From: Pecten maximus
Taxonomy: Eukaryota
Direction: 5' to 3'
Assembly (NCBI RefSeq): GCF_902652985.1
Contig: NC_047031.1
Span: 26,164,001-26,228,000, forward strand
Length of the DNA stretch: 64,000 nt
Shown here: positions 9,520 to 48,643 of the stretch, in pieces
Position numbering within the stretch: position 1 is the stretch's first letter
Layout of the letters: each line of letters starts with the position of its first letter
Program-made: the position numbers and the translations under genes
The notes under the pieces: generated by a model
Told to the model about the DNA's origin: nothing
Seen by the model: only the letters and a program-made list of their open reading frames with translations
The model's database searches: none

Positions 9520-9554
9520 GCTAATATGTTTTCTTTTTATCTTTTCAGGTAAGT
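9520..9554 (+). promoter_or_regulatory. Candidate recursive splice site 1 (zero-length exon, AG|GTAAGT at 9548/9549)
   Basis: The sequence is gCTAATatgttttctttttatcttttcAG|GTAAGT. It has a branchpoint-like CTAAT (9521-9525), a ~20-nt pyrimidine tract and a CAG acceptor directly abutting a perfect GTAAGT donor. Confidence 0.7.
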
Positions 9555-11459
9555 GTCTTTTATCAACAGTATTGGATGGTATGGTGGATAGAGTGAAAAG
9601 TAGGTTACTGTGACAGTATACTGATGACTTCCTGTGTGTAAAGTAGGTCACTGTGGTAATACTTTTGAGGCTTTCATGGTAAAATACTTGGTTTAAATAG
9701 GTTACTGTTTCCAGGTTACAGTTGAAGTTGCAGCAGAATTTTTCATCATGAAAATAAAGGCCCTGGGCAGTGATAGCACATCTTAAATTTACTGTAGGCT
9801 TTGTGTAAAGGAGCATTTCTCAAAAGATTATTGCTCAGGAATCTGATGTTTGTCAAGAAGGTCTTTTGGGGGTCTATCATTGATGATGTGGAGTTCAATA
9901 TTAATTACCTTGAATTTCTGAGGTGTTTTGAACCGTACCATATTGTCCTGCTTGAAGCTTGCCCTCGACTCAAAGTTTATGTTTTGGACCAGACTTGAGA
10001 TTATTACTGATTAAATAAGATATGACACATTATAACAGATATAAGATGTGGTTAACCGATGATGTGACAAGTGTTTGACCCAGTTACAATGTACTACCTG
10101 TACTGATAAGTCGGAGAATCAAATCACAACCTGTTTAAAATTGTCAATCTTAACGCCAAGACAGAGTTCCTTAGTCGGAGATTAGAACAGTATCCTCTAT
10201 CTTAGTAATGTTGACACTATACTTAATATACTTCTGGATAAGGTCAGAGGTCAGCTTGATTGTTAAGTTGTAGTAGTGTTCGTGTAGAGTCAGTCAAATG
10301 ACATTAGAGTTTTCTCCCCTGGTTCAATACTAACTCAGGTAAATTTCGGTATAAAAACATTTGATGATGGTTTAATGGTTTATTTTTTCTTGATTTTATG
10401 ATATACAAATGAACAATTTCAACAGACTGATTTGGACATAGATTTCAATTTTTATGCGTTCAATTAACAAAATCCTCTTAGATTTTTCGTTCTGGTAGAA
10501 TCGTTCAACATAGACGTTCGCCAATTAGAAAGATAAGTGAAATGTTTAAATAATGTTAATTCAGACTTTGACTTAAAACACTATTAAAATGACAGCACCT
10601 TAAACCCAGTGCTTTTTACAATTTGTAATAAAAAATATTTGTAAAATAAATGAAAATATTTGTAAAAATAAGCTATTTTATAACTTTTGTATAACTACGT
10701 CCCTGTCAATAAACTCGTACTCAAACTTGTCAGCCGTAGTGGAGGTACAGTGGGTCTTTAAAGACTGTAAACGGTATTTCACAACAGTTGGGAATCGAGA
10801 TGTTATATCGGCTCATATTGATCACACTATCTCCGATGGAAAGTGTGGGAGGTCTCTTTGTAATTACTTCGGTAGAAAACTGAGTTCTGTGGGTGGTGTG
10901 TTCTCTATTTCGTCACCTGACCACCAATTTATATATTTCACAATGCTTCCAATACAGCATATTAACATTTATATGTTTGGGTTTATATATGAAAAATGCC
11001 CATGTTTAGTTTTAAAATCTGGGCAACAGTTTCTGCTTGTAGTTGACTATTCATGTACAGGAACTGTTGTGATATGTTTGGAGCTTGGCGCTCATTCTTG
11101 GTCAGCAGTCTTCCGGATCTATAGACTGTGTAAGCCTCTTTGCGACCCAGAAGTCTGTTGATACCGGATTAACGGCACTTTCCAAAACAGCCTTCTTTAA
11201 CCGTTACATCTGTGCCATTGTTTGAGGAAATCATAATTCGCCACCCCGGGATACAAAACCACCCTCACTTGACCTGGGTTAGTACGGGAGTAAATCGGCT
11301 CTCTTTTAACAATCCTTCTAAACGTTTGTATTTAGTTGAGGATCAAGGCATAAGACAGACTATTTAAGATTTACTTAGAGAAGGTGCTGAAAATTAAAGG
11401 TGCCCGCTTACCTGTGTAATCTGGCTTTAGGGTACAGCTGAGTCAGCACGTATGCTATG

Positions 11460-11753
11460 GACTTGTCATAGTAATACAAAACATATCTCACTTTTGTCTC
11501 ATAAAGTTTGTAGAATGTCAGGTATAATATTATAGACCTGTCGTAGTAATACAGGTACAAAGCTCGCTGTTGTCTCACAAAGTTTGTAGAATGTCAGGTA
11601 TAATATTATAGACTTGTCGTAGTAATATAAAACATATCTCGCTGTTGTCTCAAAGTTTGTAGAATGTCAGGTAAAATATTATAGACTTGTCGTAGTAATA
11701 TAAAACATATCTCGCTGTTGTCTCACAAAGTTTGTAGAATGTCAGGTAAAATA
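11460..11753. repeat. ~74-bp tandem repeat (4 copies)
   Basis: The unit GACTTGTCGTAGTAATATAAAACATATCTCGCTGTTGTCTCACAAAGTTTGTAGAATGTCAGGTATAATATTATA starts at about 11460, 11535, 11611 and 11684. Confidence 0.9.
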
Positions 11754-12097
11754 CTGAGCAATATTTGTCGACTTTATGCAGAAAAAAGGAAATTTTCTAA
11801 AGATCTTTGTCATTAATGAAAAGACTTTTGAGGATTTAAAAGATATATCGTGTGGAGGTCGACATTTACATCCTAGGGTGATAGTCCTGTATGATGTAAT
11901 TGTGTTGTACAATCGTAGTTTTATTCAAAACGAGTTCGTTGTAATTAATGCCCTGGAGAAATACATAGCATTATGAAGTTCATTGTGATGAAGGTTTTAT
12001 ACTGATAAAACATCTTTTCCTCCATTTAAATCCCCCAAGGTGAATATAATAAAAATGGCATGAAAAAGATTGTTGGAGAGGTCCTTTTGAAATGCTA

Positions 12098-12283
12098 TAC
12101 AGTCAAATCTGTCATATATGATCTTCTAAGGGAAGCGATGAAAAAGGTCACATATGACAGGTGGTCTCTTAATCCAGGTTCTGGTAACTATAGTAAAACT
12201 AAAAAACATTGGGAGGGACAAAAATGGTCATATATGAGAGAAAGTCGCTTATTCAGGTTGTCTCTGAGGCAGGTTAGACTGTA
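12098..12283. mobile_element. MITE (Tc1/mariner-type, TA-flanked)
   Basis: TA-CAGTCAAATCTG at the left end and CAGGTTAGACTG-TA at the right end form imperfect 12-bp TIRs with TA dinucleotides on both sides. It is about 185 bp and non-coding. Confidence 0.7.
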
Positions 12284-12424
12284 TTTGTATGATGATAATA
12301 GCTGTTTTCACAGTACTGTTACTTAGTAGTATTAGTCCTTGTTGTAGGCAGTAACACAGAGGACTAGATAGCATTAAGCAATATCTTGACAAGATGAAAA
12401 TCAGATTAATTTATTTACTGGGGT

Positions 12425-12648
12425 TAATATTTCACGGGACTCACTTCAGATATTTCACATGGCTCATATTTCACAGGGGTGATATTTAATGAGACCAATA
12501 TTTCATGGGGCCGATATTTCACACGGCTAATATTTCACAGGGCTGATATTTCATATGGCTATAATATTTCAAAAGGGTAATATTTAATGGGACTAATATT
12601 TCACGGGGCTGATATTTCATGAGATCAATATTTCACGGGGCTAATATT
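12425..12648. repeat. Degenerate ~16-18-bp tandem repeat
   Basis: ATATTTCAC/TGGGGCT-like units recur through the interval. Confidence 0.8.
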
Positions 12649-13388
12649 TTAAGAATGTCCTTGTTGGAGCTATTTCACATTTATTTAATTTAGGCAACCT
12701 TACGTTAATTTTGTATGTCAACTATAGTTACAGGCCTACAATATGTATTTATAATGTATGGTTTCAATATTCAATAAGTAGTTACGGTTGTGCTTTATTT
12801 CATGACCTCCAAAATATAATAACCAAATATTACCTTTTATACGGTAACTATCTTATCAGCTTTTCTAATACCTTATATAAAAAAAGGATTGCTTTGTTAA
12901 ATTTGTCTCGTATTCTTAATAAAAATGTCTTTTCAATAAAAGGTTGCCATGCCGTTGACTATCACAAATCACCAGGTTTTATGTTTAGTGCCCTTTACCA
13001 GATTGTGTTACACTGTTTATTAATCAACTGAGGCCATTAATACATATAAAAGATAAAAAAAAAAGACGTTCTTTATCAAATCATTTGTCTTTGATAGTTC
13101 GTGTGTACTCATAGCATTAACTTCTACATTCATATCCATTTGGACGGGAAAATGTGCCGTCTTGAATTGAAAATGTTCTGTTTTATGGAGGATTAATGTA
13201 TTTAAAAGCTCCAAAGGAAATTAAAACAATCGCTATTTTATTTAATATTTGACATTTAAATACCAGTTGTTTTTTTCTTGTGTAAATTTTCTGTGTAAAA
13301 GGGAGACAACTCTGGTTTTTTGAAAAGGGAAATGAAGATGCAAAGACTTGACTCCTGACTGAGCTAATCTGTGTAGACACAGGGAAAC

Positions 13389-13596
13389 TTTGGTTTATTT
13401 TTTGTTTAACGTCCTATTAACAGTCAGGGTCATTTAAAGATGTGCCAGGTTTTGGAGGTGGAGGAAAGTACCTGGAGAAAAAACCCACCGGCCTACGGTC
13501 AGTACCTGGCAACTGCCCCACGTAGGTTTCAAGCTCGCAACCCAGTGGTGGAGGGCTAGTGATAAAGTGTCGGGACACCTTAACCACTCAGCCACC
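13389..13596 (-). mobile_element. tRNA-derived SINE, V-domain-like core, degenerate
   Basis: On the minus strand there is an A box TGGCTGAGTGG (13584-13594), a degenerate B box GCTTGAAACC, a core GTGGGTTTTTTCTCCAGGTACTTTCCTCCAC resembling the V-SINE domain, and a tail ending GCTGTTAATAGGACGTTAAACAAAAAATAAACCAAA-like. Confidence 0.8.
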
Positions 13597-13686
13597 GTCC
13601 TCATCAGACCCTGGCGGTTGGTGTCTGCCCGACACCTGTTCCGTCCTAATATAACACTTTGATGTTGTGAGGACATCGGACCCTGT
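13597..13686. mobile_element. Short inverted-repeat-bounded element abutting the SINE 5' end
   Basis: It carries an inverted repeat GTCCTCA (13597) / TGAGGAC (13668-13674), an internal hairpin GGTGTC-TGCCC-GACACC and a direct repeat CATC(A/G)GACCCTG. It is homologous to the 51.5-kb minisatellite unit. Confidence 0.45.
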
Positions 13687-14891
13687 ACTAACAAAGCGTA
13701 CCTGTTACCTATTGCAATTGAATTTGATTTTATGCAGTGTTGTATTCCTATTAACTCTAAATTTTATTTGAATCTAAAAGAATTAATGTTAATGATAGAA
13801 AAGATAGTTTCATTCGATTTATTTTAGAAAACATCTCGCACAATTATCTAACTAAAAATCAGATTGAAGGTTGATGTGGTTTTCGTGAAGGTCTTATTTA
13901 CACCATGTGACAGAAATGTGTCCTCAAGCAACTTTATATGGCAGATCGCACATCATGATTGGGCAATTTTCTTTTTCATTTTACATTTTAGATTTCATTT
14001 TCACAAGTCTGAGTCAGTAAATAATTTGTATTGGTAGCAAATAGAGGTACTGGTTTTCTAATTGATAATTAAAACTTACTCAAACGTCCAGAAATGTATA
14101 TTAAATTGTTTAGTTAGAAGTTTTCCTGTGTGAACTTCAAAATCTTGATGAATCACAGACAATCTTTTTTTAACAAAAATTTATTTCACCTTACAAAGTG
14201 TGTATTTTCTCACGTTACGAGAGGAATTTGTTTTTTTTATCTCTACATGCTTGATGCACATACCAGGTTCTGTACATTTAACATGATACACAATTTTAGC
14301 TCGGTGAACAGGTTTTATGATAAAGGTACAAGTCGTGGAAGAGTAATTTAAAAATAAATTTGGATTTATTGATAAAGTTTGAAGACCTGAGATGAATAAA
14401 TATGTTTCCAATTGAGACTTAAACCTGTTTTATTAACTAGAACCCGAGGAAATGTTCCCGTCTTCAAAGTAAGCAATAAATTTCCTAGCAGGGAAATGTA
14501 ACTTTATTAAAGATTTTTTTTGTTAAGGTATACAGTACTGTAGACTGGCCATCAGACCTAAGTTGTTTTTTTAGGAATTGTCAAGCTAAATTCTATTACT
14601 AGGTTATCTGCCCCTAGTTTGAAACAACTGAAGCTGAAGCTTTTACATTATAAAGGTGAGAACATAAATGGATGATAATGTTCTGTAACTCTGTCTTCCT
14701 CACTCAATGTCAATATTACTGCGGTGACATTAGACGTTTTTATGATGTCACTGTGAAGGTAACAACAGCAATGAAATTAGAGATATCACTTTTTTGATAT
14801 CATACTTTGGTTTTTGATGTTGCTGCATAAAGGCAACAAGAGTAAAAAAGATTTCATATAATTTTCTGAATGCCTCCTAATATGAACTATG

Positions 14892-16396
14892 ACTAGTTGA
14901 CTCCTGGCCCAGTAAAAGTGTCATTGACTCCTAGTTGACTTCCGGCCCAGTAAAAGTTTCATTATCTCCTAGTTCACTCCCAGCCAAGTAGAAGTGTCAT
15001 TGACTCCTAGTTGACTCGCGGCCAAGTAGAAGTGTCATTGACTCCTAGTTGACTCGCGGCCAAGTAGAAGTGTCATAGACTCCTAGTTGACTCCCAGTAG
15101 AAGTGTCATTAACTCCTAGTTGACTCCCGGCCCAGTAGAAGTGTCATTGACTCCTAGTTGACTCCCGGCCCAGTAGAAGTGTCATTGACTCCTAGTTGAC
15201 TCCCGGCCCAGTAGAAGTGTCATAGACTCCTAGTTGACTCCCAGTAGAAGTGTCATTGACTCCTAGTTCACTCCCAGCCAAGTAGAAGTATCATTATCTC
15301 CTAGTTAACTCCCGGCCAAGTAGAAGTGTCATTGACTCCTAGTTGACTCGCGGCCCAGTAAAAGTTTCATTATCTCCTAGTTGACTCGCGGCCCAGTAAA
15401 AGTTTCATTGACTCCTAGTTGACTCCCAGCCAAGAAGAAGTGTCATTGACTCCTAGTTGACTCCCAGTAGAAGTGTCATTGACTCCTAGTTGACTCGCGG
15501 CCAAGTAGAAGTGTCATTCACTCCTAGTTGACTCCCAGTAGAAGTGTCATTCACTCCTAGTTGACTCGCGGCCAAGTAGAAGTGTCATTCACTCCTAGTT
15601 GACTCCCAGTAGAAGTGTCATTGACTCCTAGTTGACTCGCGGCCAAGTAGAAGTGTCATTCACTCCTAGTTGACTCCCAGTAGAAGTGTCATTCACTCCT
15701 AGTTGACTCGCGGCCAAGTAGAAGTGTCATTGACTCCTAGTTGACTCCCAGTAGAAGTGTCATTCACTCCTAGTTGACTCGCGGCCAAGTAGAAGTGTCA
15801 TTCACTCCTAGTTGACTCCCAGTAGAAGTGTCATTGACTCCTAGTTGACTCGCGGCCAAGTAGAAGTGTCATTCACTCCTAGTTGACTCCCAGTAGAAGT
15901 GTCATTCACTCCTAGTTGACTCGCGGCCAAGTAGAAGTGTCATTGACTCCTAGTTGACTCCCAGTAGAAGTGTCATTCACTCCTAGTTGACTCGCGGCCA
16001 AGTAGAAGTGTCATTGACTCCTAGTTGACTCCAAGTAGAAGTTTCATTGACTCCTAGTTGACTCCCAGTAGAAGTGTCATTGACTCCTAGTTGACTCGTG
16101 GCCAAGTAGAAGTGTCATTGACTCCTAGTTGACTCGCGGCCCAGTAGAAGTGTCATTGACTCCTAGTTGACTCGTGGCCAAGTAGAAGTGTCATTGACTC
16201 CTAGTTAACTCGCGGCCCAGTAGAAGTGTCATTGACTCCTAGTTGACTCGTGGCCAAGTAGAAGTGTCATTGACTCCTAGTTGACTCGTGGCCAAGTAGA
16301 AGTGTCATTGACTCCTAGTTGACTCCCAGTAGTAGTGTCTGACTCCTAGTTGACTCGCGACCAAGTAGAAGTGTCATTGACTCCTAGTTGACTCGC
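14892..16396. repeat. Minisatellite, 38/33-bp units
   Basis: The units are AGTAGAAGTGTCATTGACTCCTAGTTGACTCGCGGCCA (38 bp) and AGTAGAAGTGTCATT(C/G)ACTCCTAGTTGACTCCC (33 bp), about 40 units in total. Confidence 0.97.
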
Positions 16397-17399
16397 ATTA
16401 AAAGTAAAAGTAACATCTCCCACTCAGTGGTTCACGGTGCATATGATGGCACGTAAGATGATCTACCTGTATGTTTCTCACCTCAGCATTGCACTCACCT
16501 GTGTGTGTAGAAAATGACAAGGTGATACCTGTAGAAACAGATGTTCATTTCACAGTATACAACACATTAAAAAACTGTGTCCCATGTGCTATATAACTTT
16601 GGTATCAGGTGTAAAACAGAGACAGAAAAAATATTGTCATCAAATATTTATATTTACATAGGTAACAGAACAGGTTGTACAGAACAGGTTGTACAGGACA
16701 GGGAACCTCATAGGTCAACATCCAAAAACATAAAAATATAAAAAAAATATTATTGTTTATAATTGGTGTCAGAAGAACAAACATAAATGTCATTTTGAAA
16801 CCTGTTAAATGTCACTTGTATTGGGTTTTGTCAACAAATAGAGGAAGGATATTGTTTAAAAGTGTATATATACATGTTCCCTATAATAAATAGAAATACA
16901 ACTGTCTCATGGGTGAGTGAACATCGAGTGTTAAGTGAATACTATGATGTTTAGTGAGTCATATCTGGTTCAACCAGTTTTTAAATATAAATGCATTGTA
17001 ATAAATCTAGTTTCTGATCAATCAAGTATTGCTTAAGCGAAAAAGTTTGAGAAAATAGATATTGGTTTGTTTATGTAATATTAGACTTCAAAACATATTA
17101 TTTTCATTACTGGATTTAAAAACATTGGTTTATAATCAGAATAAAAAGACATATTTATTAGTTTCATACAATGTCCATTTTTATAGCAACAAAAATAATT
17201 TCCACGCTTATTTTTTGTTTTGCATTCCCTAGAAAAAGTTTGTATTCATCAATGCTTGAAGATGTAAAATGACGACTTATAGAAAAATAGATCAAGTTAT
17301 ATTTTTAGTCCGAAGTTCTGGTTCGCCTTGATGTTTGTACATTTGTATTTTGTTTTTAATTTCACGTTGTTTGCAGCATCTGCACAGTAGCCACATGAC

Positions 17400-17770
17400 C
17401 AGGTTTCATCGCAACCAATCCTGAAACGAAAGCATACTCTAGATAAAACCAGTGATTCTGCAGGTGTCTGTCATTATTTGTTAAAAGTTCCGAATTGTCC
17501 CCACGTACATTTCACTTATTTCTAAGAATGTGCATTTCACTTTTGTTTTTTGCCATTACACATCAAAGATGGCTGCCGCAGTTGCTGATTGGTCAAAACT
17601 CAGATACGATTCAATTTTGATAAAATCGGTGCTGTAGTGTAATGAAGAATTTAGCAAAACAAAGCATTCTAAATTATATAGAAAGAATACAAACGGCTGG
17701 TTGGTCTTTTTGAAAGAAAAGCTCTTATTGGTTGATTTGTCTGAACAAGGGCTTTTCATTGGTTGGTAGT
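17400..17770. promoter_or_regulatory. Candidate promoter/enhancer: YY1-like motif plus four CCAAT boxes
   Basis: AAGATGGCTGCC lies at 17566-17577. CCAAT is at 17415, and ATTGG at 17588, 17727 and 17758. Confidence 0.4.
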
Positions 17771-17961
17771 TGAAGCATTTAGTTTATACATATTCTTGTC
17801 TGAACTTCATTTGTAATTAGAAATAAGTATGTATTTGATGATGTATATTGTTGTTGCCCTTAAAATGAAGAATCTTTTATGTCTTCCATATATATAAGTT
17901 TCATATTGTTATTTTCACAGCAAATGTTTGGTGGTGTATATATGAATGGTTACATCTTTAA

Positions 17962-18052
17962 GAGTAGAATTGGTGTATCTATATGATAAATATTGTCATA
18001 GTAGAATTGGTGTATCTAGATGATAAATATTGTCATAGTAGAATTGGTATAT
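17962..18052. repeat. 37-bp tandem repeat (~2.5 copies)
   Basis: The unit is AGTAGAATTGGTGTATCTA(T/G)ATGATAAATATTGTCAT. Confidence 0.9.
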
Positions 18053-20562
18053 CCACATGATTTCTACTGAATCTTCATTAGTATCAGGATGAAACTTGAT
18101 AGAAAATGTGAGAAGCCTTCAATTGTTTAAAGTAAAGCTATAAATTTTGTGTTTCAAAAAAAAATTCTATGTGAGAATTGTAAAAGACTGAGACTTTTAC
18201 ACAAAACAAAGCGTTGATATTATAAAGGAACGCTTCCGATAGGACATGGACGCTTTCCTTCTAAACAAAACTTTTCATATAACTACACAATGTTATATCT
18301 ATAATTCATGTTAACAGAACCCAAACAATAGTATGACATGTCTGCCTACCCGGGATAGACAATCTACATTAAACATTGATGTTTCAGCAGCTCCGTGGAA
18401 ATTTCTATAAAAGTGAGAGTTATATAGCATCGGTTGTCATGTGGAACTATGAAAAAAAAGATAAAATATTCTGTGTGTTTTGAATAGCTAATAGATTGTG
18501 TGGTAGTTATGGGGTGGTTTGTGATGTGTCTTTACCACGTGTAACAGGCTGAGGCATCAGTATACTTTATATATCCATACTAAATTTGCCGTTCACACGT
18601 GTTACTTGATCCTGTTAGAAAATCGATGTCATTTTCTCTCTAATTGAGTCATCAGACTTTGGTAAATAAGGTTCTAAAGATATTTTTCTAGATTGTCTCC
18701 AGAAAATTACATGCTTCAGTGATTATGATAATATCTCGCATTCAATATGGTGTGAACATCATTTAATCGTGAGTCGGCTGTTTGACTGTATTTGTGGGAA
18801 TATCCCTGTGTTATGTGTGTGTTGAAATTCGGATACAGGCTTATATCAATACTACGGACACGCTACGCTGATCAGCCATGAAATCTTCCAACCATGACCT
18901 ACTCGGCAGGTATAGATATCCCTATAATGGTGGTCGGTCATGTGAGACCGTACTGAGCTGACTGGATCCAATTATATTCCATTAACACAAAACATTGTAA
19001 AGATGCAGATGACTTTGAGCACCAGACCATAGAATTCAGCTTGCCGAGGAAACTTGGGAAATATGAAGGGGTGTCATACATTTTTTATAAGTTGTTTGAT
19101 TTGTGGAGTATAACAGGGTAGACGAGGACCGACTCATTTGTAGATCTAGAACGACCAAGGACGACGTGTGACAAGTATTTTGTAGTACTACTTTCTGTCG
19201 ACTAACCTCGTCACTTTCCTTGTCAATGATATACTTCCACCATCCGATTCTACGCCAAAAGTTATCATAGTACATCTATTCCGGACCACGCATATGTTTG
19301 ACTGGATTACTGATTTACAATCTGTAACAAACATTACCATCACCAAGATTCTGGATCTGTCTGAGAAGCATCCATGTGATTATTCTTGTGCAAGTATACA
19401 TAGAAATCCGTGTAGCGAGTGGTATTTATAGAATGGAGAACCTCTAAATTCAGTCGTCAGTACTTAATGAGCACATGTGTGACATTCTGTAGCAAGGATT
19501 AACAACAATTTTCAAAGACAGCTGGGAGTATACATGTTAATTTAAGATTTGTGAAAACCGTCTCGCGAAATTTGCGAGATTACGAGACATTGCCGTTACG
19601 ACTATCCTTGTTACACGATGAGCTTCTGTCCCTACGATCTAAGCACCTTGAAGGTAAGGAAAGAATGACACCGTGATGTCCTAACTACAGAACGAAGCTT
19701 AAATTCAAGGACAGAAAATGTTCTGGATATGTTAGAAGCTTGATTGTTTTTACTCGGAAATTAGGCCGTTGACGATTTTTACTGTAATGGTTTCTCATGG
19801 TAGTTTGTGTTAATTTGTTCACGGTGGCTTGTTCGCATCGTAACACGTTGGCTTTTTTCGTCATGCATGGTTGTACTAATGCCTAGTGCTGTTGGTAATG
19901 GGTCCCTGGTCCAGGAGATATTAATCCCTGATCGTTGACTAAATTATACACGTTACATCTACAAATGTGTGTTCACCATTAGTGAAGGTTTCAGTCGAAA
20001 ATATGTTAGGATTGCTAAGAATTTTATGAAACAGTGAACATATTCATTGTACCTTGGTTTTATATCTGTACATTAGCTTAATGAAGGCAGAACTATAAAT
20101 TTGACTCATTTGAAATGGTGGGTATATTGTAGAGGTTGCCAGTTAAGACAGCATTTCGTATAGAGAAGAAATATTGGGCCCCACTCCACCAAGGATGGAG
20201 TAGACCCTTTGTTCTTACTGAATCTCAAATGTCCATCTTGGAATAGCAGCCAGAATATCTAATCCTTCCCATGAGGGTTTTGGAGAGTGTTTCCCTCTCA
20301 AGAGACTGGACCCAAGAGTCTATAAGTCTGTAGGTCTCTAAGGAGCCCATCTAGCCGAGTCCCCCTCCCTAGAGGCTCTTAGCTCCAAGTATCTTCTGAG
20401 CACAAGTGATTTTAAGCTTCAATAGCCCCAAAACCCCAGGGAGGCTATGAGACCCAGCCTCTATCTTTAGAGTCTGCAAGTCCCAGTCTTGTGAGTGCTA
20501 GACTGTATCTACAGAGCCTGCAAGCCCTTGTCTGCCTTCAAAGACCCAGTTTTTCACAACTT

Positions 20563-20682
20563 GTAAGCTCCAGTGATTCTTTGAGCTCCTTCCAGTCATC
20601 TAAGAGTCCCTGTAAGCTCCAGTGATTCTTTGAGCTCCTTCCAGTCATCTAAGAGTCCCTGTAAGCTCCAGTGATTCTTTGA
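20563..20682. repeat. 49-bp tandem repeat (~2.5 copies), diverged relative of the 21-23 kb array
   Basis: The unit GTAAGCTCCAGTGATTCTTTGAGCTCCTTCCAGTCATCTAAGAGTCCCT shares its period and GATTCT.TGAGCTCCTT.CAG core with the downstream array. Confidence 0.85.
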
Positions 20683-21149
20683 CCTTGTCATTAAAGTCTG
20701 TGAGACATTCAGAAGCCTGTTATGAAGCTAACTATAAATTGGACTCTTTGAAATGTAGTAGAGTGTGCAAGATTTGGCTCATTTCAGCATCTGATCTCTG
20801 TATGACCCAGTCAAAATCACGGTGTACCAACTCCATCCAAGAGGGAACCTTCTGTAATCTTCGAACTAAAGACCATTGAGTGGACAATCAGCCTTAGAAG
20901 TATAAACCCCAGTAGAGGCTAGATCTGTTGAGCTCTTCAGAAGACTAAGACCCAGTTTAGAGCACGTTTGTGAGCTCTCCGACAGAAGCCCATCTAGGGC
21001 CCCAGATTTTGTGAGCTCTTTAAGCTCCAAGTACATCGAGTGCCACAGATTTGTGAGCTCTTTCAGAAGTAAACCCATCGGGAGGAGGCCCAGACTTTGA
21101 GTCTTTCAGACGTATAGCCCCCAAGTCCCAGTCTGTGAATCGCTTCAGA

Positions 21150-22965: not shown

Positions 22966-23224
22966 AGAGTAGCCATGTAGACCCTGTTAATCCCAGTCTC
23001 CCATAACACTTGTTGAGGAGATGATTGACATCTATCAGACCAACGTGTTGAGGAAGCTGTGGGCCACAGATACTGGGAGGCATGTCTGGACTTCGTCATC
23101 CAGTCTGATGGCATTCACGGAATCATGGACAGTACAAATTACACATATCTTGTGATTTTCATTTAATTAATTCAGAATGTCTTCATTTAAAAAAACCATT
23201 TCCCTTGACTAGGAACAAAGGCGG

Positions 23225-29397: not shown

Positions 29398-29433
29398 TGT
29401 TCAGTGAGGTAGCCACCACCTACTACAAGGAGA
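29398..29433 (+). repeat. Dispersed ~36-bp motif, copy 3
   Basis: The sequence is TGTTCAGTGAGGTAGCCACCACCTACTACAAGGAGA. Confidence 0.85.
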
Positions 29434-31243: not shown

Positions 31244-31408
31244 TATGCCCCACATGTCTGATGGTGTGGCCAATTGGTTAGTTAAGTTTGGTGACTAATA
31301 TATCATACTTTTTATTTAATTTCCAGAAATGGGTTTATTGAATCATGAATACAATATGTAGATGTTTGGTATTTCATTGAATGAGTAATTGAATAAAATG
31401 TCCCAAAA

Positions 31409-36757: not shown

Positions 36758-36901
36758 AGCCTATGTGGAAAATAATTGTGTGTTAAAAAACTGTTAATAA
36801 TGACCAGCCTATGTGGAAAATAATTGTGTGTTAAAAAACTGTTAATAATGACCAGCCTATGTGGAAAATAATTGTGTATTAAAAAACTGTTAATAATGAC
36901 C
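36758..36901. repeat. 48-bp tandem repeat (3 copies)
   Basis: The unit is AGCCTATGTGGAAAATAATTGTGTGTTAAAAAACTGTTAATAATGACC. Confidence 0.92.
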
Positions 36902-36984
36902 GCTTACAAATGTATATAGAAAGTTCACGAAATATTCTCTTAGAGAGTATAAATGCACTTTGTTTAGAGAGTATGCAGCAGGGA

Positions 36985-36997
36985 TGCCATCTAGTGG
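36985..36997 (-). promoter_or_regulatory. CTCF-like motif
   Basis: The minus strand reads CCACTAGATGGCA, matching the CTCF core CCASYAGRKGGCR. Confidence 0.4.
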
Positions 36998-38712
36998 CTG
37001 TAATGGTATTAACTGGTCTGTGTTTTTTCTCAATGACACGTTTGCATGTTCAGCTAGATACATCGTACTCCAAGCTTCCGACTGATCACAGACGAGCATA
37101 CTTCAGTTGATGAAACCGTTCCCTTGGAAACATTACATTAACTGATATAAAAAGGGAAGAAAAACAATGCGTGAAAAGAAATTGACACGCTCAAATACAT
37201 TTCCTCCCATTTTGAATAGGAAACAGCAGTTTTGTGTTCTGTTCATATACGCGATTGTTCTCGATATCAGATCAACTCTGATGTTCATGCCTATAGCTAA
37301 TACATGAAGGTATTAAACGGAGACTAATATGTCTGAAAGAAAACAATGGTTTCTTCTAATAGAAAACATGTCAAAGTGAAGACTGTTATTCCATGACCAC
37401 AGTACACAACAAACTTAGGTCCCGGAGGTTTCATGAATAGGTCAAAACATTTCTCTGTACTTTAAACACTTGGAGAGCAAAGATGTACAAACATTTTTTG
37501 GAGTTTTATTAATAAGTCGCGCATTCCCAGTACTCTCCACCTATGTACAAGGAAGGTCATCCAGAGTTTTATAAATAGATCACCAACTCCTGGTACTTTC
37601 TACACTCAAAGACCAGGAACAGAACTTCACAATGTAATATGAATGATTCATTCATTCCTCGTACTTCTGTGCTCCGAGACGACCGATGGACAAGGAAGCA
37701 AGTCCGGAGTTTTATAAATAGGTCATAAATTCCAAGTACATCTGTACTTGTAAGAAGTATGTACTTGTTAGAAATATTGGTTTTTGAGGAGCTAGACATA
37801 TCGTAAGCCATATTTGGGTGTTCACAGTAACATATATAGGAATTCCATTAGAAAACCCCTAAACAACGTGTTTATGTAGCTTCCTCGTCCTTTCTACTAT
37901 GTATCATATACAACATGCATCTCATTTTGTATCACAATGAATTCGGTATTGATTTATTTGTGAAATTCTAATGTTTGTGTTCATAAAGTGGTCTTTCAGA
38001 GATGAGGAAGCTGCGATACTAAACCGCAGGAATTTCTCCGCGTTATAAATTTATAGATTTTTTTAGTGCCCCAATTTTTGTTTCCGTAAAAGTGCTGGGA
38101 TGCTTTATCGTAGGAAATTTGAATATATTTGATATGACAGAGGTTTTGTGGGAGAGGTTGGTGAGACAACTGTCTGGTATTGTAATAGACAGCTTGGCTG
38201 TTGACTGAGGCTGATTACAATTGGCGAATCATTTTAGTACAATAACACCAAACCGTCCATCACATATAGGAGGACTATTCAGAATATAGATCACATTTCT
38301 TATCGGTTTCCTTAACTTGGTATCGCCATTATATGTCCATTAATTGTATTGAATATCATTCTCAATTGTAAACACCCTGGGAGATATGGACCAAGTGTAC
38401 TGTTGTTCAACAATGGAATCTTCCAAATAATTTTATCTGTCTCCCCTATGAAATATGGTTTCTTCCGCCTGTGTTCTTTATGATGTAATGTGTTTTGTGA
38501 TGAGAGAGAAGGTTACATGATGGATGACCCCAGTTATGTAATGAGGCTGGAATTTCTTAATAACTCTTCTCAGTTTTCTCTTATTTTACCAGAAAGACTA
38601 TATCTTTCATAATTGAATCTCCAACTTTCTGAGAATATTTTTGATTTGTGGGTAAACAATACACCTGATTACATAAGAGCTTTGAAATGTACAAGGAATT
38701 TACCGTCCTATC

Positions 38713-39560
38713 ACCTGTTGTCGTGGTGATACATGTTACCTGTTGTCGTGGTGATACATTTGACCTGTTGTCGTGGTGATACATTTGACCTGTTGTCGTG
38801 GTGATACATGTTACCTGTTGTCCTGGTGATACATTTGACCTGTTGTCGTGGTGATACATTTGACCTGTTGTCGTGGTGATACATTTGACCTGTTGTCGTG
38901 GTGATACATGTTACCTGTTGTCGTGGTGATACATTTGACCTGTTGTCATGGTGATACATGTTACCTGTTGTCGTGGTGATACATGTTACCTGTTGTCGTG
39001 GTGATACATGTTACCTGTTGTCATGGTGATACATTTGACCTGTTGTCGTGGTGATACATGTTACCTGTTGTCGTGGTGATACATGTTACCTGTTGTCGTG
39101 GTGATACATTTGACCTGTTGTCATGGTGATACATGTTACCTGTTGTCGTGGTGATACATGTTACCTGTTGTCATGGTGATACATGTTACCTGTTGTCATG
39201 GTGATACATTTGACCTGTTGTCGTGGTGATACATTTGACCTGTTGTCATAGTGATACATGTTACCTGTTGTCGTGGTGATACATGTTACCTGTTGTCGTG
39301 GTGATACATGTTACCTGTTGTCATGGTGATACATTTGACCTGTTGTCATGGTGATACATGTTACCTGTTGTCATGGTGATACATTTTACCTGTTGTCATG
39401 GTGATACATGTTACCTGTTGTCGTGGTGATACATGTTACCTGTTGTCATGGTGATACATTTGACCTGTTGTCATGGTGATACATTTGACCTGTTGTCATG
39501 GTGATGTATTTTACCTGTTGTTATAGTGATGCATTTTACCGGTTGCTGTAGTGATACATT
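38713..39560. repeat. Minisatellite, 25-bp unit
   Basis: The unit is ACCTGTTGTC(G/A)TGGTGATACAT(GTT/TTG), about 34 copies. Confidence 0.97.
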
Positions 39561-41207
39561 TCCAAGATTAATTTTGTTCTAAAATAATTAGTTTTACCAA
39601 ATACTTGACCTGACTTAATGAAGGGAACATGGGTTTCCTGTGGTTGAGATTTTTCTGCCTGGCTTCTGATAAAGTTGGAGACAATTAGGGACTTTCTGTC
39701 AGAGTTTGAAATGTCCGGGCACCATTATCAGGGCACCATTATCGGACAGCAATTAATCTGTAGTGTTAAGAAATACCAGAAAAAATTCTGAGCATGGAAC
39801 CTATCATTTAGAGTTGGTAGACGTTTGTTTGTAGACTGTGTATGGTAGGCAGACATTATAACACTAATTTCAGTCCTAAGCTAACTCTCTTATCAGTTCC
39901 GATGTTATGTTTCTGTGTTAATTTTGATGAAATTGGCCAAATTGTGGCAAGCAATGACTGTCAATAGAAATGTACAACATGATTTTTACAAGCCAGCTGA
40001 TATTGACGGGATCATAAGAGATATACTTGTCAGAGAACGACCAGACATCTGTTTATGTTATCTGTGTATTTAAATACTGTGGATCTGTATTGGTATACAG
40101 CATCATTCTAACACGACTATTTACCTGTGTGCCTGTAGTAGTATTACAGAGAAGTCGGGGACATGCTCAGTTTATTACCAGGCGTTGGATGCATTGCCTG
40201 TGTCTAGTTATCAAATGATTAATTTATCTCGCCACGAAGCATGCACGGTGATGTGGTTCACATGGTACGGAGGCTGGAGACGGGCTTCGCCTGCGAGATC
40301 ACACGCTGGTGACCATGTCAACCCTCCTGGGGCTGCAGTCACTTGGTGCAAACATAGCCCCTCCTAGCGGTCTCATTATGAGAAGGAAATATATCGAAAA
40401 ATCATCACTTAATAAAGCAGACTGGATATATTTACATTTCCACTCGATGGCATTATACACACACTACCAGAATCGGTGTTCATTGAGATATTAAATACAA
40501 TCAGATCTGAGTCATTTGAATGCTTCTACCATTTTGTATAATTGTCCGACTACAAAAAAAACATTTCTGCTTCATGATGCTATTCTTAGAATATTGTTGA
40601 CCTCAAGCAATTCATTAATGCAAATAGTATTTGGTTCAAAAGATTGAAAATTATATTTGATATTTTTTTTAGGTTTTTAATTTTTTAATAATCCATTGAT
40701 ATTGCATGTAAAATTTAAATTCAAATGTAAATTCTAAAACTTTCATTAAAGAAATATTGGCATTGTACTTGTATTTAATGAGACAAATATGGAACATGTT
40801 GATAGATTTGTTCTAAATTGATTGATGCTTGGATAAATAATGTGATTGGGTATCTGATGTAAACTTGTTAAGTATGTTTGCTTTTAATTGAATATCAACA
40901 ATACAGATGATTAGGCCTTAATTATATATACATAGTAACACCTACTAGGATTGGTTGATTACATCCTGAATGATTGCAACAGCTAATTTGATTGGATACT
41001 CTGATATAAAAAACACTCCATACATTCAATATGATTGGTGGACTAATTATTACCGGAATTATAGTAACAACTAATTTGATTGGCTACTCAGCTAAAAACC
41101 ATACAATTGGTCAGGATGCCTTTATCTTTTACGCAATTATCTGATTGATTTTCGTACAAGCTGATTATTGATGGACTCTCTAGAGCAGGGAATTTCCTCC
41201 TTTACAA

Positions 41208-41220
41208 TGCCACCTGGTGG
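41208..41220 (-). promoter_or_regulatory. CTCF-like motif
   Basis: The minus strand reads CCACCAGGTGGCA, matching the CTCF core. Confidence 0.4.
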
Positions 41221-41571
41221 GCTTTTTTGTATTTACTGATGATTATGAGGCTGGGTCAAGGTTGTCATATTCACTCAAGTCTCAATGACAAAAAAATCTA
41301 ATTAAAAATCCATCAGATTGGACCTATAGATTGAAGCCTTGCTGTAATTGTTGGTGAAGAAGCAGATAGAATTGTAGCCGATGTCTGTAATGGAATAAAT
41401 ACCTTATAGAGACAACGGGATCATCTTCTGGTTTTAGTAGATTCCGGCTATTTTTGTTCTAGGGTGATAAGTGGTCAGAAAAACGTGGATTGGTGACATT
41501 TCAGATTTAACTGTGAGTCAGTTAAGGTCATACACAGTGTATCTAGTCGAATTTATAGAGACTTAAATATA

Positions 41572-44500
41572 GACAGGGTTTGTAATACAGGTGTCCAGTT
41601 TATACAGACTTAGACAGGGTTTATAATACAGGTGTCCAGTTTATACAGACTTAGACAGGATTTATAATACAGGTGTCCAGTTTATACAGACTTAGACAGG
41701 GTTTATAATACAGGTGTCCAGTTTATACAGACTTAGACAGGGTTTGTAATACAGGTGTCCAGTTTATACAGACTTAGACAGGCTTTATAATACAGGTGTC
41801 TAGTTTATACAGACTTAGACAGGGTTTATAATACAGGTGTCCAGTTTATACAGATTTAGACAGGGTTTATAATACAGGTGTCCAGTTTATACAGACTTAG
41901 ACAGGATTTATAATACAGGTGTCCAGTTTATACAGACTTAGACGGGGTTTATAATACAGGTGTCCAGTTTATACAGACTTAGACAGGGTTTATAATACAG
42001 GTGTCCAGTTTATACAGACTTAGACAGGATTTATAATACAGGTGTCCAGTTTATACAGACTTAGACGGGGTTTATAATACAGGTGTCTAGTTTATACAGA
42101 CTTAGACAGGGTTTATAATACAGGTGTCTAGTTTATACAGGGTTTATAATACAGGTGTCTAGTTTATACAGACTTAGACAGGGTTTATAATACAGGTGTC
42201 CAGTTTATACAGGGTTTATAATACAGGTGTCCAGTTTATACAGACTTAGACAGGGTTTATACTACAGGTGTCTAGTTTATACAGGGTTTATAATACAGGT
42301 GTCCAGTTTATACAGACTTAGACAGGGTTTATAATACAGGTGTCCAGTTTATACAGACCTAGACAGGGTTTATAATACAGGTGTCTAGTTTATACAGACT
42401 TAGACAGGGTTTATAATACAGGTGTCCAGTTTATACAGACCTAGACAGGGTTTATAATACAGGTGTCCAGTTTATACAGACTTAGACAGGGTTTATAATA
42501 CAGGTGTCCAGTTTATACAGACTTAGACAGGGTTTATAATACAGGTGTCCAGTTTATACAGACGACTTAGACAGGGTTTATAATACAGGTGTCTAGTTTA
42601 TACAGACGACTTAGACAGGGTTTATAATACAGGTGTCTAGTTTATACAGACTTAGACAGGGTTTATAATACAGGTGTCCAGTTTATACAGACTTAGACAG
42701 GGTTTATAATACAGGTGTCCAGTTTATACAGGGTTTATAATACAGGTGTCCAGTTTATACAGACTTAGACAGGGTTTATAATACAGGTGTCCAGTTTATA
42801 CAGACTTAGACAGGGTTTATAATACAGGTGTCCAGTTTATACAGACTTAGACAGGGTTTATAATACAGGTGTCCAGTTTATACAGACTTAGACAGGGTTT
42901 ATAATACAGGTGTCTAGTTTATACCGACTTAGACAGGGTTTATAATACAGGTGTCTAGTTTATACAGACCTAGACAGGGTTTATAATACAGGTGTCCAGT
43001 TTATACAGACTTAGACAGGGTTTATAATACAGGTGTCCAGTATATACAGACTTAGACAGGGTTTATAATACAGGTGTCCAGTTTATACAGACTTAGACAG
43101 GGTTTATAATACAGGTGTCCAGTTTATACAGACCTAGACAGGGTTTATAATACAGGTGTCCAGTTTAGACAGGATTTATAATACAGGTGTCCAGTTTATA
43201 CAGACTTAGACAGGGTTTATAATACAGGTGTCCAGTTTATACAGGGTTTATAATACAGGTGTCCAGTTTATACAGACTTAGACAGGGTTTATAATACAGG
43301 TGTCTAGTTTATACAGACTTAGACAGGGTTTATAATACAGGTGTCCAGTTTATACAGACTTAGACAGGGTTTATAATACAGGTGTCCAGTTTATACAGAT
43401 TTAGACAGGGTTTATAATACAGGTGTCCAGTTTATACAGACTTAGACAGGGTTTATAATACAGGTGTCCAGTTTATACAGACTTAGACAGGGTTTATAAT
43501 ACAGGTGTCCAGTTTATACAGGGTTTATAATACAGGTGTCCAGTTTATACAGGGTTTATAATACAGGTGTCCAGTTTATATAGACTTAGACAGGGTTTAT
43601 AATACAGGTGTCCAGTTTATACAGACTTAGACAGGGTTTATAATACAGGTGTCCAGTTTATACAGACTTAGACAGGGTTTATAATACAGGTGTCCAGTTT
43701 ATATAGACTTAGACAGTGTTTATAATACAGGTGTCCAGTTTATACAGACTTAGACAGGATTTATAATACAGGTGTCCAGTTTATACAGACTTAGACAGGG
43801 TTTATAATACAGGTGTCCAGTTTATACAGACTTAGACAGGGTTTATAATACAGGTGTCCAGTTTATACAGATTTAGACAGGGTTTATAATACAGGTGTCC
43901 AGTTTATACAGACTTAGACAGGGTTTATAATACAGGTGTCCAGTTTATACAGACTTAGACAGGATTTATAATACAGGTGTCCAGTTTATACAGACTTAGA
44001 CAGGGTTTATAATACAGGTGTCCAGTTTATACAGACTTAGACAGGGTTTATAATACAGGTGTCCAGTTTATATAGACTTAGACAGTGTTTATAATACAGG
44101 TGTCCAGTTTATACAGACTTAGACAGGGTTTATAATACAGGTGTCCAGTTTATACAGACTTAGACGGGGTTTATAATACAGGTGTCCAGTTTATACAGAC
44201 TTAGACAGGGTTTATACTACAGGTGTCCAGTTTATACAGACTTAGACGGGGTTTATAATACAGGTGTCCAGTTTATACAGACTTAGACAGGGTTTATACT
44301 ACAGGTGTCCAGTTTATACAGACTTAGACGGGGTTTATAATACAGGTGTCCAGTTTATACAGACTTAGACAGGATTTATAATACAGGTGTCCAGTTTATA
44401 CAGACTAAGACAGGGTTTATAATACAGGTGTCTAGTTTATACAGACTTAGACAGGGTTTATAATACAGGTGTCCAGTTTATACAGACTTAGACAGGGTTT

Positions 44501-47018
44501 ATAATACAGGTGTCCAGTTTATACAGACATAGACAGGGTTTATAATACAGGTGTCCAGTTTATATAGACTTAGACAGGGTTTATAATACAGGTGTCCAGT
44601 TTATACAGACTTAGACAGGGTTTGTAATACAGGTGTCCAGTTTATACAGACTTAGACAGGGTTTATAATACAGGTGTCCAGTTTATACAGACTTAGACAG
44701 GGTTTATAATACAGGTGTCCAGTTTATACAGGGTTTATAATACAGGTGTCCAGTTTATACAGACTTAGACAGGGTTTATAATACAGGTGTCCAGTTTATA
44801 CAGACTTAGACAGGGTTTATAATACAGGTGTCCAGTTTATACAGACTTAGACGGGGTTTATAATACAGGTGTCCAGTTTATACAGACGACTTAGACAGTG
44901 TTTATAATACAGGTGTCCAGTTTATACAGACTTAGACAGGGTTTATAATACAGGTGTCCAGTTTATACAGACTTAGACAGGGTTTATAATACAGGTGTCC
45001 AGTTTATACAGACTTAGACAGGGTTTATAATACAGGTGTCCAGTTTATACAGACTTAGACGGGGTTTATAATACAGGTGTCCAGTTTATACAGACTTAGA
45101 CAGGGTTTATACTACAGGTGTCCAGTTTATACAGACTTAGACGGGGTTTATAATACAGGTGTCCAGTTTATACAGACTTAGACAGGGTTTATAATACAGG
45201 TGTCCAGTTTATACAGGATTTATAATACAGGTGTCTAGTTTATACAGACTTAGACAGTATTTATAATACAGGTGTCCAGTTTATACAGACTTAGACAGGG
45301 TTTATAATACAGGTGTCCAGTTTATACAGACTTAGACAGGGTTTGTAATACAGGTGTCTAGTTTATACAGACTTAGACAGGATTTATAATACAGGTGTCC
45401 AGTTTATACAGGGTTTATAATACAGGTGTCCAGTTTATACAGGGTTTATAATACAGGTGTCCAGTTTATACAGACTTGGACAGGGTTTATAATACAGGTG
45501 TCCAGTTTATACAGGGTTTATAATACAGGTGTCCAGTTTATACAGACTTAGACAGGATTTATAATACAGGTGTCTAGTTTATACAGACTTAGACAGGGTT
45601 TATAATACAGGTGTCCAGTTTATACAGACAGACAGGATTTATAATACAGGTGTCCAGTTTATACAGACAGACAGGATTTATAATACAGGTGTCCAGTTTA
45701 TACAGACTTAGACAGGGTTTATAATACAGGTGTCCAGTTTATACAGACTTAAACAGGATTTATAATACAGGTGTCCAGTTTATACAGGGTTTATAATACA
45801 GGTGTCCAGTTTATACAGACTTAGACAGGGTTTATAATACAGGTGTCCAGTTTATACAGACTTAGACAGGATTTATAATACAGGTGTCTAGTTTATACAG
45901 ACTTAGACAGGGTTTATAATACAGGTGTCCAGTTTATACAGACTTAGACAGGGTTTATAATACAGGTGTCCAGTTTATACAGACTTAGACAGGATTTATA
46001 ATACAGGTGTCCAGTTTATACAGGGTTTATAATACAGGTGTCCAGTTTATACAGACTTAGACAGGATTTATAATACAGGTGTCCAGTTTATACAGACTTA
46101 GACAGGGTTTATAATACAGGTGTCCAGTTTATACAGACTTAGACAGGATTTATAATACAGGTGTCCAGTTTATACAGACTTAGACAGGATTTATAATACA
46201 GGTGTCCAGTTTATACAGACTTAGACAGGGTTTATAATACAGGTGTCCAGTTTATACAGACTTAGACGGGGTTTATAATACAGGTGTCCAGTTTATACAG
46301 ACTTAGACAGGGTTTATAATACAGGTGTCCAGTTTATACAGGGTTTATAATACAGGTGTCTAGTTTATACAGACTAAGACAGGGTTTATAATACAGGTGT
46401 CCAGTTTATACAGGATTTATAATACAGGTGTCCAGTTTATACAGACTTAGACGGGGTTTATAATACAGGTGTCCAGTTTATACAGACTTAGACAGGGTTT
46501 ATAATACAGGTGTCCAGTTTATACAGGGTTTATAATACAGGTGTCTAGTTTATACAGACTAAGACAGGGTTTATAATACAGGTGTCCAGTTTATACAGAC
46601 TTAGACAGGGTTTATAATACAGGTGTCCAGTTTATACAGACTTAGACAGGATTTATAATACAGGTGTCCAGTTTATACAGACTTAGACAGGATTTATAAT
46701 ACAGGTGTCCAGTTTATACAGGGTTTATAATACAGGTGTCTAGTTTATACAGACTAAGACAGGGTTTATAATACAGGTGTCCAGTTTATACAGATTTAGA
46801 CAGGGTTTATAATACAGGTGTCCAGTTTATACAGACTTAGACAGGGTTTATAATACAGGTGTCCAGTTTATACAGACTTAGACAGGATTTATAATACAGG
46901 TGTCCAGTTTATACAGACTTAGACAGGGTTTGTAATACAGGTGTCCAGTTTATACAGACTTAGACAGGGTTTATAATACAGGTGTCCAGTTTATACAGAC
47001 TTAAACAGGATTTATAAT
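41572..47018. repeat. Large minisatellite, 41-bp unit with 31-bp deletion variants (~5.4 kb)
   Basis: The unit is ACAGGTGTCCAGTTTATACAGACTTAGACAGGGTTTATAAT, roughly 135 units. Short units lack a 10-bp segment between the two ACAG copies. Confidence 0.98.
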
Positions 47019-48085
47019 GATATTCAGATCATCCCAAGGTTATGTACCTTTTAAAATGGTTTTTACTCTAAGTATTTGAAGTATTATTGTCAAAGCCAAA
47101 AAATTTAAATTTTAAATTTATCCTGTGAAACATATGTATTGATCAGACACAGGCAATGCAGTTGTGTTACAAAAGCTAAGGGAACATTTTCTGGAGTTTA
47201 AGTGAATTTAAAAAACGTAAAAACCAAATAGTTTGTGTTTAAAGCATTGTATATAGCTGTGCGGAATATTCTAAAGTATGAAAAGTATGTAATGTTATGG
47301 GGACGGAAAATAACTACCACATACACGTAAATCTATGACGATCCCGTGTAACATTTACATGTCAAAACTGTACAGCATGGAATTAGCTTTTATTTGCATG
47401 TCAAAATACTGCAATGCTAAAACAAAATACCAACATACCGTGAAGCACAAAGGTCTCAAAGTTCCCAAACATCAAATAAAAGCACATTCAAAACCTGGAA
47501 AAGACTGCTAGACAGCCCGGTTCTATAGACTTTTATATATGCAAGTCTTTTTAGAATGTATTTGTTTTTTTGTTTCCTGTCAGAAGACTGAAATAATTCC
47601 CCAGAAAATACTGTTGCATGTTGAGACATATAAGGAATATCCAGGCATCTGTTTTTATATGGACCCACAGTCTTATTAGTAAAATATATATCTTGTTCTT
47701 TTTTTATGCATCATTTATTCTTGTGTAAATATCCAGAAAGTAAACATAATATTATGATATGTTTGAAAAAGAATAGATTAGATATCTCAAAAGATCAAAT
47801 ATATATACCCAGGTCTGGTTCCAGACACAAAGGTCTGGCGATCTTTCATTGGGCCTTCGTGTTTGTTTGTAGCCGAGTGAGGGATATGTAACTCTAAAAA
47901 AAAAATCTGAAAGCTTGTTAAGCTGAGGATCTGCACTCAATGTATATCATGGTTTTTCTTTGAATTGAGAGGTTTTTGAGGAGAATTGGGCTATTTGTGT
48001 CTGTAGTCTATCATGATACACGAACCTGACGTTTCCAAGTTGATTAATATTGTATTCTTTGATCTTCTTCAGTCATAGTTTCATA

Positions 48086-48304
48086 TAGGCGAGTAAAAAT
48101 ACCTAGAGAGCCGTTCTTTATATCAAAATAGGCAAGTAAAAATTCCTAGAGTGAAGTTCTTTATATCAAAATAGGAGAGTAAAAATACCTAGAGAGCGGT
48201 TCTTTATATAAAAATAGGCGAGTAAAAATTCCTAGAGAGAGAGGTTCTTTATATCAAAATAGGCGAGAAACATTCCCAGAGAGCGGTTTTTTGTATATCA
48301 AAAT
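48086..48304. repeat. ~43-bp tandem repeat (5 copies)
   Basis: The unit is ATAGGCGAGTAAAAAT(A/T)CCTAGAGAGCGGTTCTTTATATCAAA. Confidence 0.9.
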
Positions 48305-48603
48305 ATTCTAGGAAAAATTTCAAAGCTAAATGACATCTTTGTTTAGTCTTTGAAGTAATTGGGATTTTTATAGAGGTTAAATTGCTACATTTCATGAAAT
48401 TGTATTTTACATATAATTTTTGACCCCATTAGAAAGAATCATGAAATATAAATCTCTCTTGATACAGAGTTAATTAGTAAGGAATTTAACTGGTGTGTGT
48501 GAAATATAGAGAAATTTGTTCTATTTGAACAAAACGTTTATATTTGTCCCACAAAATGTTACCAAGTAGAGTTCAATCAGAAACTGTGTATGTAATGTTA
48601 TTG

Positions 48604-48643
48604 TGACTAATGTTGTTTTCTCTTTTTGTCTTTTTAGGTAAGT
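48604..48643 (+). promoter_or_regulatory. Candidate recursive splice site 2 (zero-length exon, AG|GTAAGT at 48637/48638)
   Basis: The sequence is tGACTAATgttgttttctctttttgtctttttAG|GTAAGT. It has a near-consensus branchpoint, a long pyrimidine tract and a TAG acceptor abutting a perfect GTAAGT donor. Confidence 0.7.

Follow-up and report, generated by a model that had tools for sequence, protein, structure and literature searches.

Candidate zero-length recursive splice sites in a 130.6-kb intron of a couch potato-type gene of the scallop Pecten maximus

How is a very long intron removed from a mollusc transcript? The question is raised by a stretch of 64,000 nucleotides from the scallop Pecten maximus (C17:26164001–26228000, referred to here as the window), which lies in the gene LOC117315584. 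The original prediction had placed two zero-length recursive splice sites, or ratchet points, at 9548/9549 and 48637/48638 on the + strand, and had taken the stretch for the inside of a giant + strand intron. The second of these claims was borne out, as the window maps wholly within a single 130,644-nt intron of this spliced and annotated gene. Both sites are present, a third lies upstream, and the three are very probably zero-length recursive splice sites of this 130.6-kb intron. The sequence considered includes the window, a wider region of 264 kb (the window plus 100 kb on each flank), and the 918.3-Mb genome assembly of 3,983 contigs. Coordinates are those of the window, with negative values upstream of it.

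The two sites in the window read ...gctaatatgttttctttttatcttttcag|GTAAGTG and ...gactaatgttgttttctctttttgtctttttag|GTAAGTG. Each consists of a pyrimidine tract of ~20 nt, interrupted by a single purine, and then CAG or TAG abutting GTAAGTG. The branch points that had been proposed near 9524 and 48610 are also in place, with the branch A of a CTAAT at 9524 (−25) and at 48610 (−28); these are branch-point-like by sequence. The 3' splice site is thus complete, from the branch point through the pyrimidine tract to YAG, and is fused directly to a consensus 5' splice site, the defining arrangement of a ratchet point. The intron and the parts of the two sites are as follows.

−53473 (C17:26110527) to 77170 (C17:26241170), + strand: the 130,644-nt intron of LOC117315584, with the window (1–64000) as its interior
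9521–9525, + strand: branch-point-like CTAAT, from the sequence, A at 9524 (−25)
9529–9548, + strand: pyrimidine tract and CAG, 3' splice site half of candidate recursive site 2 of 3, with TT at −6/−5
9549–9555, + strand: GTAAGTG, 5' splice site half of site 2; an exon end ...GAG joined here would give GAG|GTAAGT
48607–48611, + strand: branch-point-like CTAAT, from the sequence, A at 48610 (−28)
48618–48637, + strand: pyrimidine tract and TAG, 3' splice site half of candidate recursive site 3 of 3, supported by the shuffle test and TT at −6/−5
48638–48644, + strand: GTAAGTG, 5' splice site half of site 3

The octamer AGGTAAGT occurs twice in the 64 kb, with both strands scanned, and both occurrences are the two sites. 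This octamer alone is not above chance, since 3.5 copies are expected in the window. The composite motif, defined as 16 pyrimidines followed by NYAG|GTAAGT with at most one mismatch, is found twice in the window as compared to 0.00 times in 100 dinucleotide-preserving shuffles.

A third, equally strong site, overlooked in the original prediction, lies 16.5 kb upstream of the window at −16526 (C17:26147474) and reads ...ccctcttttgtcttttcag|GTAAGTG. It has a branch point near −30, a pyrimidine tract of ~20 nt and CAG. All three sites have at most one purine in 16 nt followed by NYAG|GTAAGTG. One uniform rule, applied alike to scallop, clam and limpet (YAG|GTRAG behind 18 nt of which 14 or more are pyrimidines), gives exactly three matches in the 264 kb, all on the + strand and all in the one intron, and none on the − strand. 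The flanks of the sites are single-copy in the genome, and any two sites have in common only the ~35-nt splice signal and a short downstream motif, which indicates that they are not recent duplicates. BLAST of both window site regions against the genome returned only an unrelated repeat at 9300–9408 and a local minisatellite. An origin of the sites from a repeat or transposon was considered and rejected, because the flanks were found to be single-copy and mutually unrelated. Protein searches with the open reading frames (ORFs) that overlap the sites gave no matches.

The host gene is of the couch potato/RBPMS/MEC-8 type and encodes two RNA recognition motifs (RRMs). Its exon translations, together with the names of the sources, show an RRM (PF00076) that bears the ...RLEFAK signature, and another RRM at the C-terminus, as MEC-8 has. 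Exons were searched one at a time rather than as a joined model, and the full-length comparison was made through database proteins. The full-length relatives were obtained by a profile-free search with one exon, and a relative mapped onto the genome confirms the other exons. The upstream exon, which is the first coding exon (SMDSVN...AAAEEE), was located through the conserved ..EEE N-terminal peptide of these relatives, encoded at −53.5 kb on the + strand. It reads ...GCGGAGGAAGAG at its end and finishes in GAAGAG|GTAAGA at −53474 (+ strand). The downstream RRM exon (VRTLF) starts behind a good acceptor, ttag|GTGCGG, at 77171. Further + strand exons start at 86779 (PVGFVTFNTRKAAEAAKADLQ) and at 87608, and the second RRM is encoded at ~97.4, 102.7 and 106.0 kb. 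The short exon that follows VRTLF...RTYE has two versions, GYENSLLKVTNKNGKNTS and GYENALLKVMGKPGKNNAVSN (83661–83732; RefSeq P0237 versus P0151), which look like mutually exclusive exons common to bivalves.

RefSeq isoforms of LOC117315584 run from EEE directly into VRTLF; the two exons are therefore neighbours in the mature mRNA, with the whole of the intron removed between them. The upstream exon end GAAGAG, if joined to any of the sites, would recreate a GAG|GTAAGTG donor, an argument made from sequence. The sites cut the intron into segments of 36,948, 26,074, 39,089 and 28,533 nt and stand at 28.3, 48.2 and 78.2% of its length. Three points placed at random would leave a largest segment this small with P = 0.008.

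A comparable array is found in the clam Mercenaria mercenaria, a member of a different bivalve order. The orthologous intron, between ...TTPEDE and a VRTLF-type exon, is 68,881 nt long, and the uniform rule again gives exactly three matches: all are on the + strand inside the intron, and the rest of the 99-kb clam locus has none on either strand. These sites read tttcag|GTAAGG, ttttcag|GTAAGTG and ttttcag|GTAAGA and fall at 29.0, 53.6 and 78.6% of the intron. Their evenness has P = 0.004, and their agreement with the scallop fractions has P = 0.002–0.007. The upstream exon of the clam ends in GATGAG, which on paper would likewise recreate a donor when joined to a site. Branch points of the sites lie at −25 to −35, and TT is present at −6/−5 in all six (three scallop, three clam). 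The gene is long in other molluscs as well, with orthologous spans of 173 kb in Mizuhopecten, 142 kb in Ylistrum, 120 kb in Solemya, 122 kb in the chiton Liolophura and 415 kb in the whelk Babylonia.

The short downstream motif is the second element common to the sites. Repeats of the form AAAGTAGGT(C/T)ACTG follow both sites in the window. The 9-mer AAAGTAGGT, which has the form of a donor, AAA|GTAGGT, has 13 copies in the 264 kb, every one of them on the + strand, and nine of these lie 49–700 nt after the three sites. Its offset is +77 after site 1 and +49 and +92 after site 2; after site 3 it occurs from +194 onward, inside a 40-bp minisatellite. The copies in the window are as follows.

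9597–9605, + strand: AAAGTAGGT, weaker donor-like AAA|GTAGGT; a recursive exon ending here would be 51 nt long and contain an in-frame TGA
9640–9653, + strand: second copy of the motif, AAAGTAGGTCACTG; alternative end of a 94-nt recursive exon
48774–49369, + strand: 40-bp minisatellite of ~15 copies, whose unit carries a donor-like AAA|GTAGGTCACTG; first exact copy at 48831 (+194)

As a donor, AAA|GTAGGT is weaker than the recreated GAG|GTAAGTG. It would be able to define a cryptic exon, as in the recursive splicing exons (RS-exons) of vertebrates, and in the scallop it lies at +49 to +196. The candidate scallop exons of 79, 51 and 196 nt all contain an in-frame stop (3/3), read by eye from the sequences, as do those of two of the three clam sites. 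The clam sites are followed by AAA|GTAGGTG at +44, CAG|GTAAGTG at +64 and TTG|GTAAAGT at ~+42, and one of the two copies of AAAGTAGGT in the clam locus is that 44 nt after the first site. An 11-mer, GGATATTGGTA, that the scallop minisatellite unit has in common with clam site 3 is not significant by itself (E = 0.22) and is not counted as evidence.

Elsewhere in the scallop genome, 12 sites of the GTAAGTG class were compared, namely the three described here and L035, L039, L040, L043, L046, L047, L049, L052 and L069. A strong donor motif is present at +20 to +130 in seven of the 12, as compared to ~11% expected. One of these sites, L069, came to light by way of the AAAGTAGGTCACTG motif, and with L069 set aside the count is six of 11. 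None of nine sites that resemble ordinary exon ends, coding exons or repeat sequence has a strong downstream donor. The 14-mer AAAGTAGGTCACTG is found 225 times in the genome, its reversed control 11 times. Of the 20 copies that were sampled, the one at C2:16651579 (− strand) lies 57 nt downstream of a further textbook site, and this C2 module is unique in the genome. A dispersed repeat family represented by L055, L056, L063, L065, L067 and L074, whose motif also occurs at 9640–9653, carries AAAGTAGGTCACTGTGACCTAC with the perfect palindrome AGGTCA-nnn-TGACCT, whose layout is that of a consensus inverted repeat of the oestrogen-response-element type.

With its core intact and at most one mismatch, the composite motif is found at ~25 places in the genome, and three of these, all on one strand and within 65 kb, are the sites described here. 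By our own arithmetic this density (~1.4e-8 per strand position) gives an expectation of ~0.001 for a 65-kb stretch. An exact pattern that fits all three sites is found at 17 places, versus eight for its reversed control; 10 of the 17 have [CT]T[GA]TCTTTTYAG|GTAAGT in common, and nine of those 10 read TGTC. Copies of the 15-mer core, TCTTTTYAGGTAAGT, are clustered, with three at this locus, three on C15 (− strand) in addition to a fourth variant there (L047), and two on C17 (− strand) at 30.35–30.41 Mb. There are seven same-strand pairs within 150 kb where, again by our own arithmetic, ~0.06 would be expected. The genome listing for this 15-mer contains no match on C1–C6, which is odd and possibly reflects a limit of the search.

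The C15 copies belong to a second array of four sites of the same signature on the − strand (C15:25063065–25203866; L047, L077, L078 and 25096358–72), spaced 48.0, 59.5 and 33.3 kb apart. Two of its loci have unrelated flanks, and L047 carries AAAGTAGGTCACTG at +80 and +140. An unplaced 18-kb scaffold (C3898:2828–4053, L052) is near-identical to C15:25202343–25205366 (L078) and is probably an uncollapsed haplotype of that locus. Two ratchet-like same-strand pairs were also observed. One is at C17:30353371 and 30411301 (− strand), 58 kb apart, and the other is at C5:26974125 and 27118939 (− strand; L035 and L040), 145 kb apart, with a GTAAGT donor 39–65 nt downstream of each site.

The original prediction found no supportable coding exon in the window, and this stands, as the long ORFs lie in minisatellites and 10 non-repeat ORFs have no match in a Pfam scan; an Rfam scan of the window likewise gave none. 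Approximately 21% of the 264 kb consists of tandem repeats with periods of 25–110 bp; one of them, at 41570–47018, has a 41-bp unit and extends over 5.4 kb. The long ORFs of the 264 kb (e.g. 54633–56108) are all artefacts of repeat periods divisible by three. A positive GC skew of 0.09–0.25 is sustained over 24000–56000 on the sense strand of the intron, and minisatellites contribute to it in part.

We infer from the arrangement of the sites that the spliceosome uses them and that the intron is removed stepwise. During transcription, the exon end ...GAAGAG would be spliced to the first site at −16526, and this ligation would recreate a consensus donor, GAG|GTAAGTG. The recreated donor would then be spliced to 9548; a further step would lead to 48637, and the last one to the true acceptor at 77170. 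With successive splicing of this kind the intron would be released in four lariats (36.9, 26.1, 39.1 and 28.5 kb), and the mRNA would bear no mark of the process. Each site would probably be recognised first by exon definition, aided by the AAA|GTAGGT 50–200 nt downstream, as part of a cryptic recursive exon. The weaker AAA|GTAGGT would lose to the recreated GTAAGT, and its use would insert a short exon with an in-frame stop.

Several observations weigh against this reading, or at least temper it. The 15-mer core TCTTTTYAGGTAAGT is not enriched over the whole genome (27 copies versus 33 for the reversed control), and the case is therefore one of clustering and context. A specific sequence, TGTCTTTTCAG|GTAAGTG, is common to scallop sites on different chromosomes, and this could reflect common origin and not selection. 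The downstream AAAGTAGGTCACTG is part of a dispersed repeat, and most of the 20 sampled copies are embedded in similar repeated sequence. Contigs of four sequencing runs over 46000–51900 contain no joints, and none covers 48167–48757, a result that is uninformative rather than negative; those recovered are scattered, low-depth X1 contigs, probably derived from DNA, and repeat-derived pile-ups at 51.5–51.9 kb. The number and relative positions of the sites are kept in Mercenaria, but the match between scallop and clam is positional, with no alignable conserved block beyond the signals themselves. In the limpet Patella vulgata the orthologous intron (49.5 kb) lacks any site of this type, its best AG|GTRAG being preceded by only 56% pyrimidines, and the feature is thus not universal in molluscs. 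The array is common to two distant bivalves and is not general in the phylum.

Other explanations of the sites can be compared with these data. The sites might instead be without function, as look-alikes that arose by chance or as remnants of a duplicated or mobile sequence in a genome very rich in repeats. Such an origin would agree with the lack of enrichment of TCTTTTYAGGTAAGT over its reversed control, with the specific TGTCTTTTCAG common to scallop sites, and with the abundance of minisatellites in the genome, including some that copy splice junctions. This is nevertheless extremely improbable. The shuffles leave 0.00 sites to be expected in the window. The three sites share the sense strand of a single intron, where they are evenly spaced, and their flanks are single-copy and mutually unrelated; the clam has three sites at the same relative positions. 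It is also very unlikely that the sites serve some other role without ordered stepwise removal, either as acceptors for internal alternative promoters and first exons or as decoys that occupy the upstream donor. Many isoforms are annotated for genes of the couch potato type and some gastropod proteins begin with different first exons, as such a role might predict. However, all Pecten isoforms examined begin with the same exon, and a role of this kind would leave both the obligatory GTAAGT and the even spacing unexplained.

A third alternative is that each site is the acceptor of a conserved cryptic or poison cassette exon (51–196 nt, ending in AAA|GTAGGT) that is really included in part of the transcripts, where it would trigger decay or tune expression of this RNA-binding protein. 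This overlaps the ratchet-point reading and does not exclude it, and the donor-like motif after each site and the in-frame stops in the candidate exons of 3/3 scallop and 2/3 clam sites would be expected of it; vertebrate recursive splicing also acts through RS-exons (Blazquez et al., PMC6224609). There is no reason for a plain cassette exon to begin with GTAAG, but all six sites of the two species have it, and the RefSeq isoforms examined show no insert at the EEE|VRTLF junction. Inclusion of this kind as the real function of the sites therefore seems unlikely, and zero-length recursive splice sites are the preferred interpretation.

Should the sites be used, they would give the first indication that molluscs remove introns stepwise. 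The claim that recursive splicing is uncharacterised in this phylum agrees with the literature searched, which on mollusc, bivalve, oyster and cephalopod yielded nothing relevant. No report of recursive splicing was retrieved for molluscs or other lophotrochozoans, and the matches for oyster, cephalopod and RBPMS were incidental mentions. The array bears on the question of whether stepwise removal of very long introns is ancestral in bilaterians or is reinvented where introns grow. It also bears on what defines a ratchet point, as the recurrent AAA|GTAGGT is a candidate exon-definition partner. The simple search rules used here pick out further arrays on C15, C17 and C5. A more speculative proposal, which we consider doubtful, is that recursive removal of the EEE|VRTLF intron is an ancient protostome trait of couch potato, common to flies and bivalves and lost in the limpet. 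The bivalve sites would then be defined by a dedicated weak donor, AAA|GTAGGT, that has been kept since the split of scallop and clam, was amplified into a minisatellite in the scallop, and recurs at other arrays such as that on C15.

Recursive splicing is an established process in insects and in vertebrates, and the scallop sites resemble both forms. The ratchet points of Drosophila (Ubx, kuz, osp and couch potato, cpo) likewise juxtapose 3' and 5' splice sites at AG|GT behind a prominent pyrimidine tract. They also have TT at −6/−5, a branch point near −30, a close resemblance to one another and donor motifs downstream, and they divide very long introns evenly. In the fly, ratchet points are strongly alike, with TT at −5/−6 in 196 of 197 (99.5%) and branch points at −36 to −21, and cpo itself has two ratchet points, with three lariats observed (Duff et al., 10.1101/006163). 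Recursive sites occur in most fly introns longer than 40 kb, the first site of three-site introns stands at ~25% of the length, and donor motifs are enriched in the stretches that follow such sites, in keeping with the demands of exon definition (Pai et al., PMC6110457). The supplements of that study do not contain cpo. Fly cpo is the homologue of the scallop host gene, a likeness at the level of the gene. The scallop differs in phylum (Mollusca, Bivalvia), in having three sites where cpo has two, in that use of its sites is read from sequence, and in the extended, lineage-specific consensus TGTCTTTTCAG|GTAAGTG. At 131 kb, its intron is also larger than the fly recursive introns quoted for Ubx (73 kb) and Tet (~55 kb).

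Vertebrate recursive splicing through RS-exons was reportedly described by Sibley et al. in 2015. As in those exons, a weaker donor 50–200 nt downstream of the scallop sites could define a cryptic exon, the inclusion of which would bring a premature stop. In the scallop and clam, by contrast, the downstream donor is a recurrent 9-mer, AAAGTAGGT, and its competition with the recreated donor is putative; we know of no fixed downstream donor sequence at vertebrate recursive sites. The array in LOC117315584 is thus very probably an instance of a known mechanism. It belongs to a phylum for which the literature searched contains no description of that mechanism, and to the homologue of a fly gene that is known to use it.

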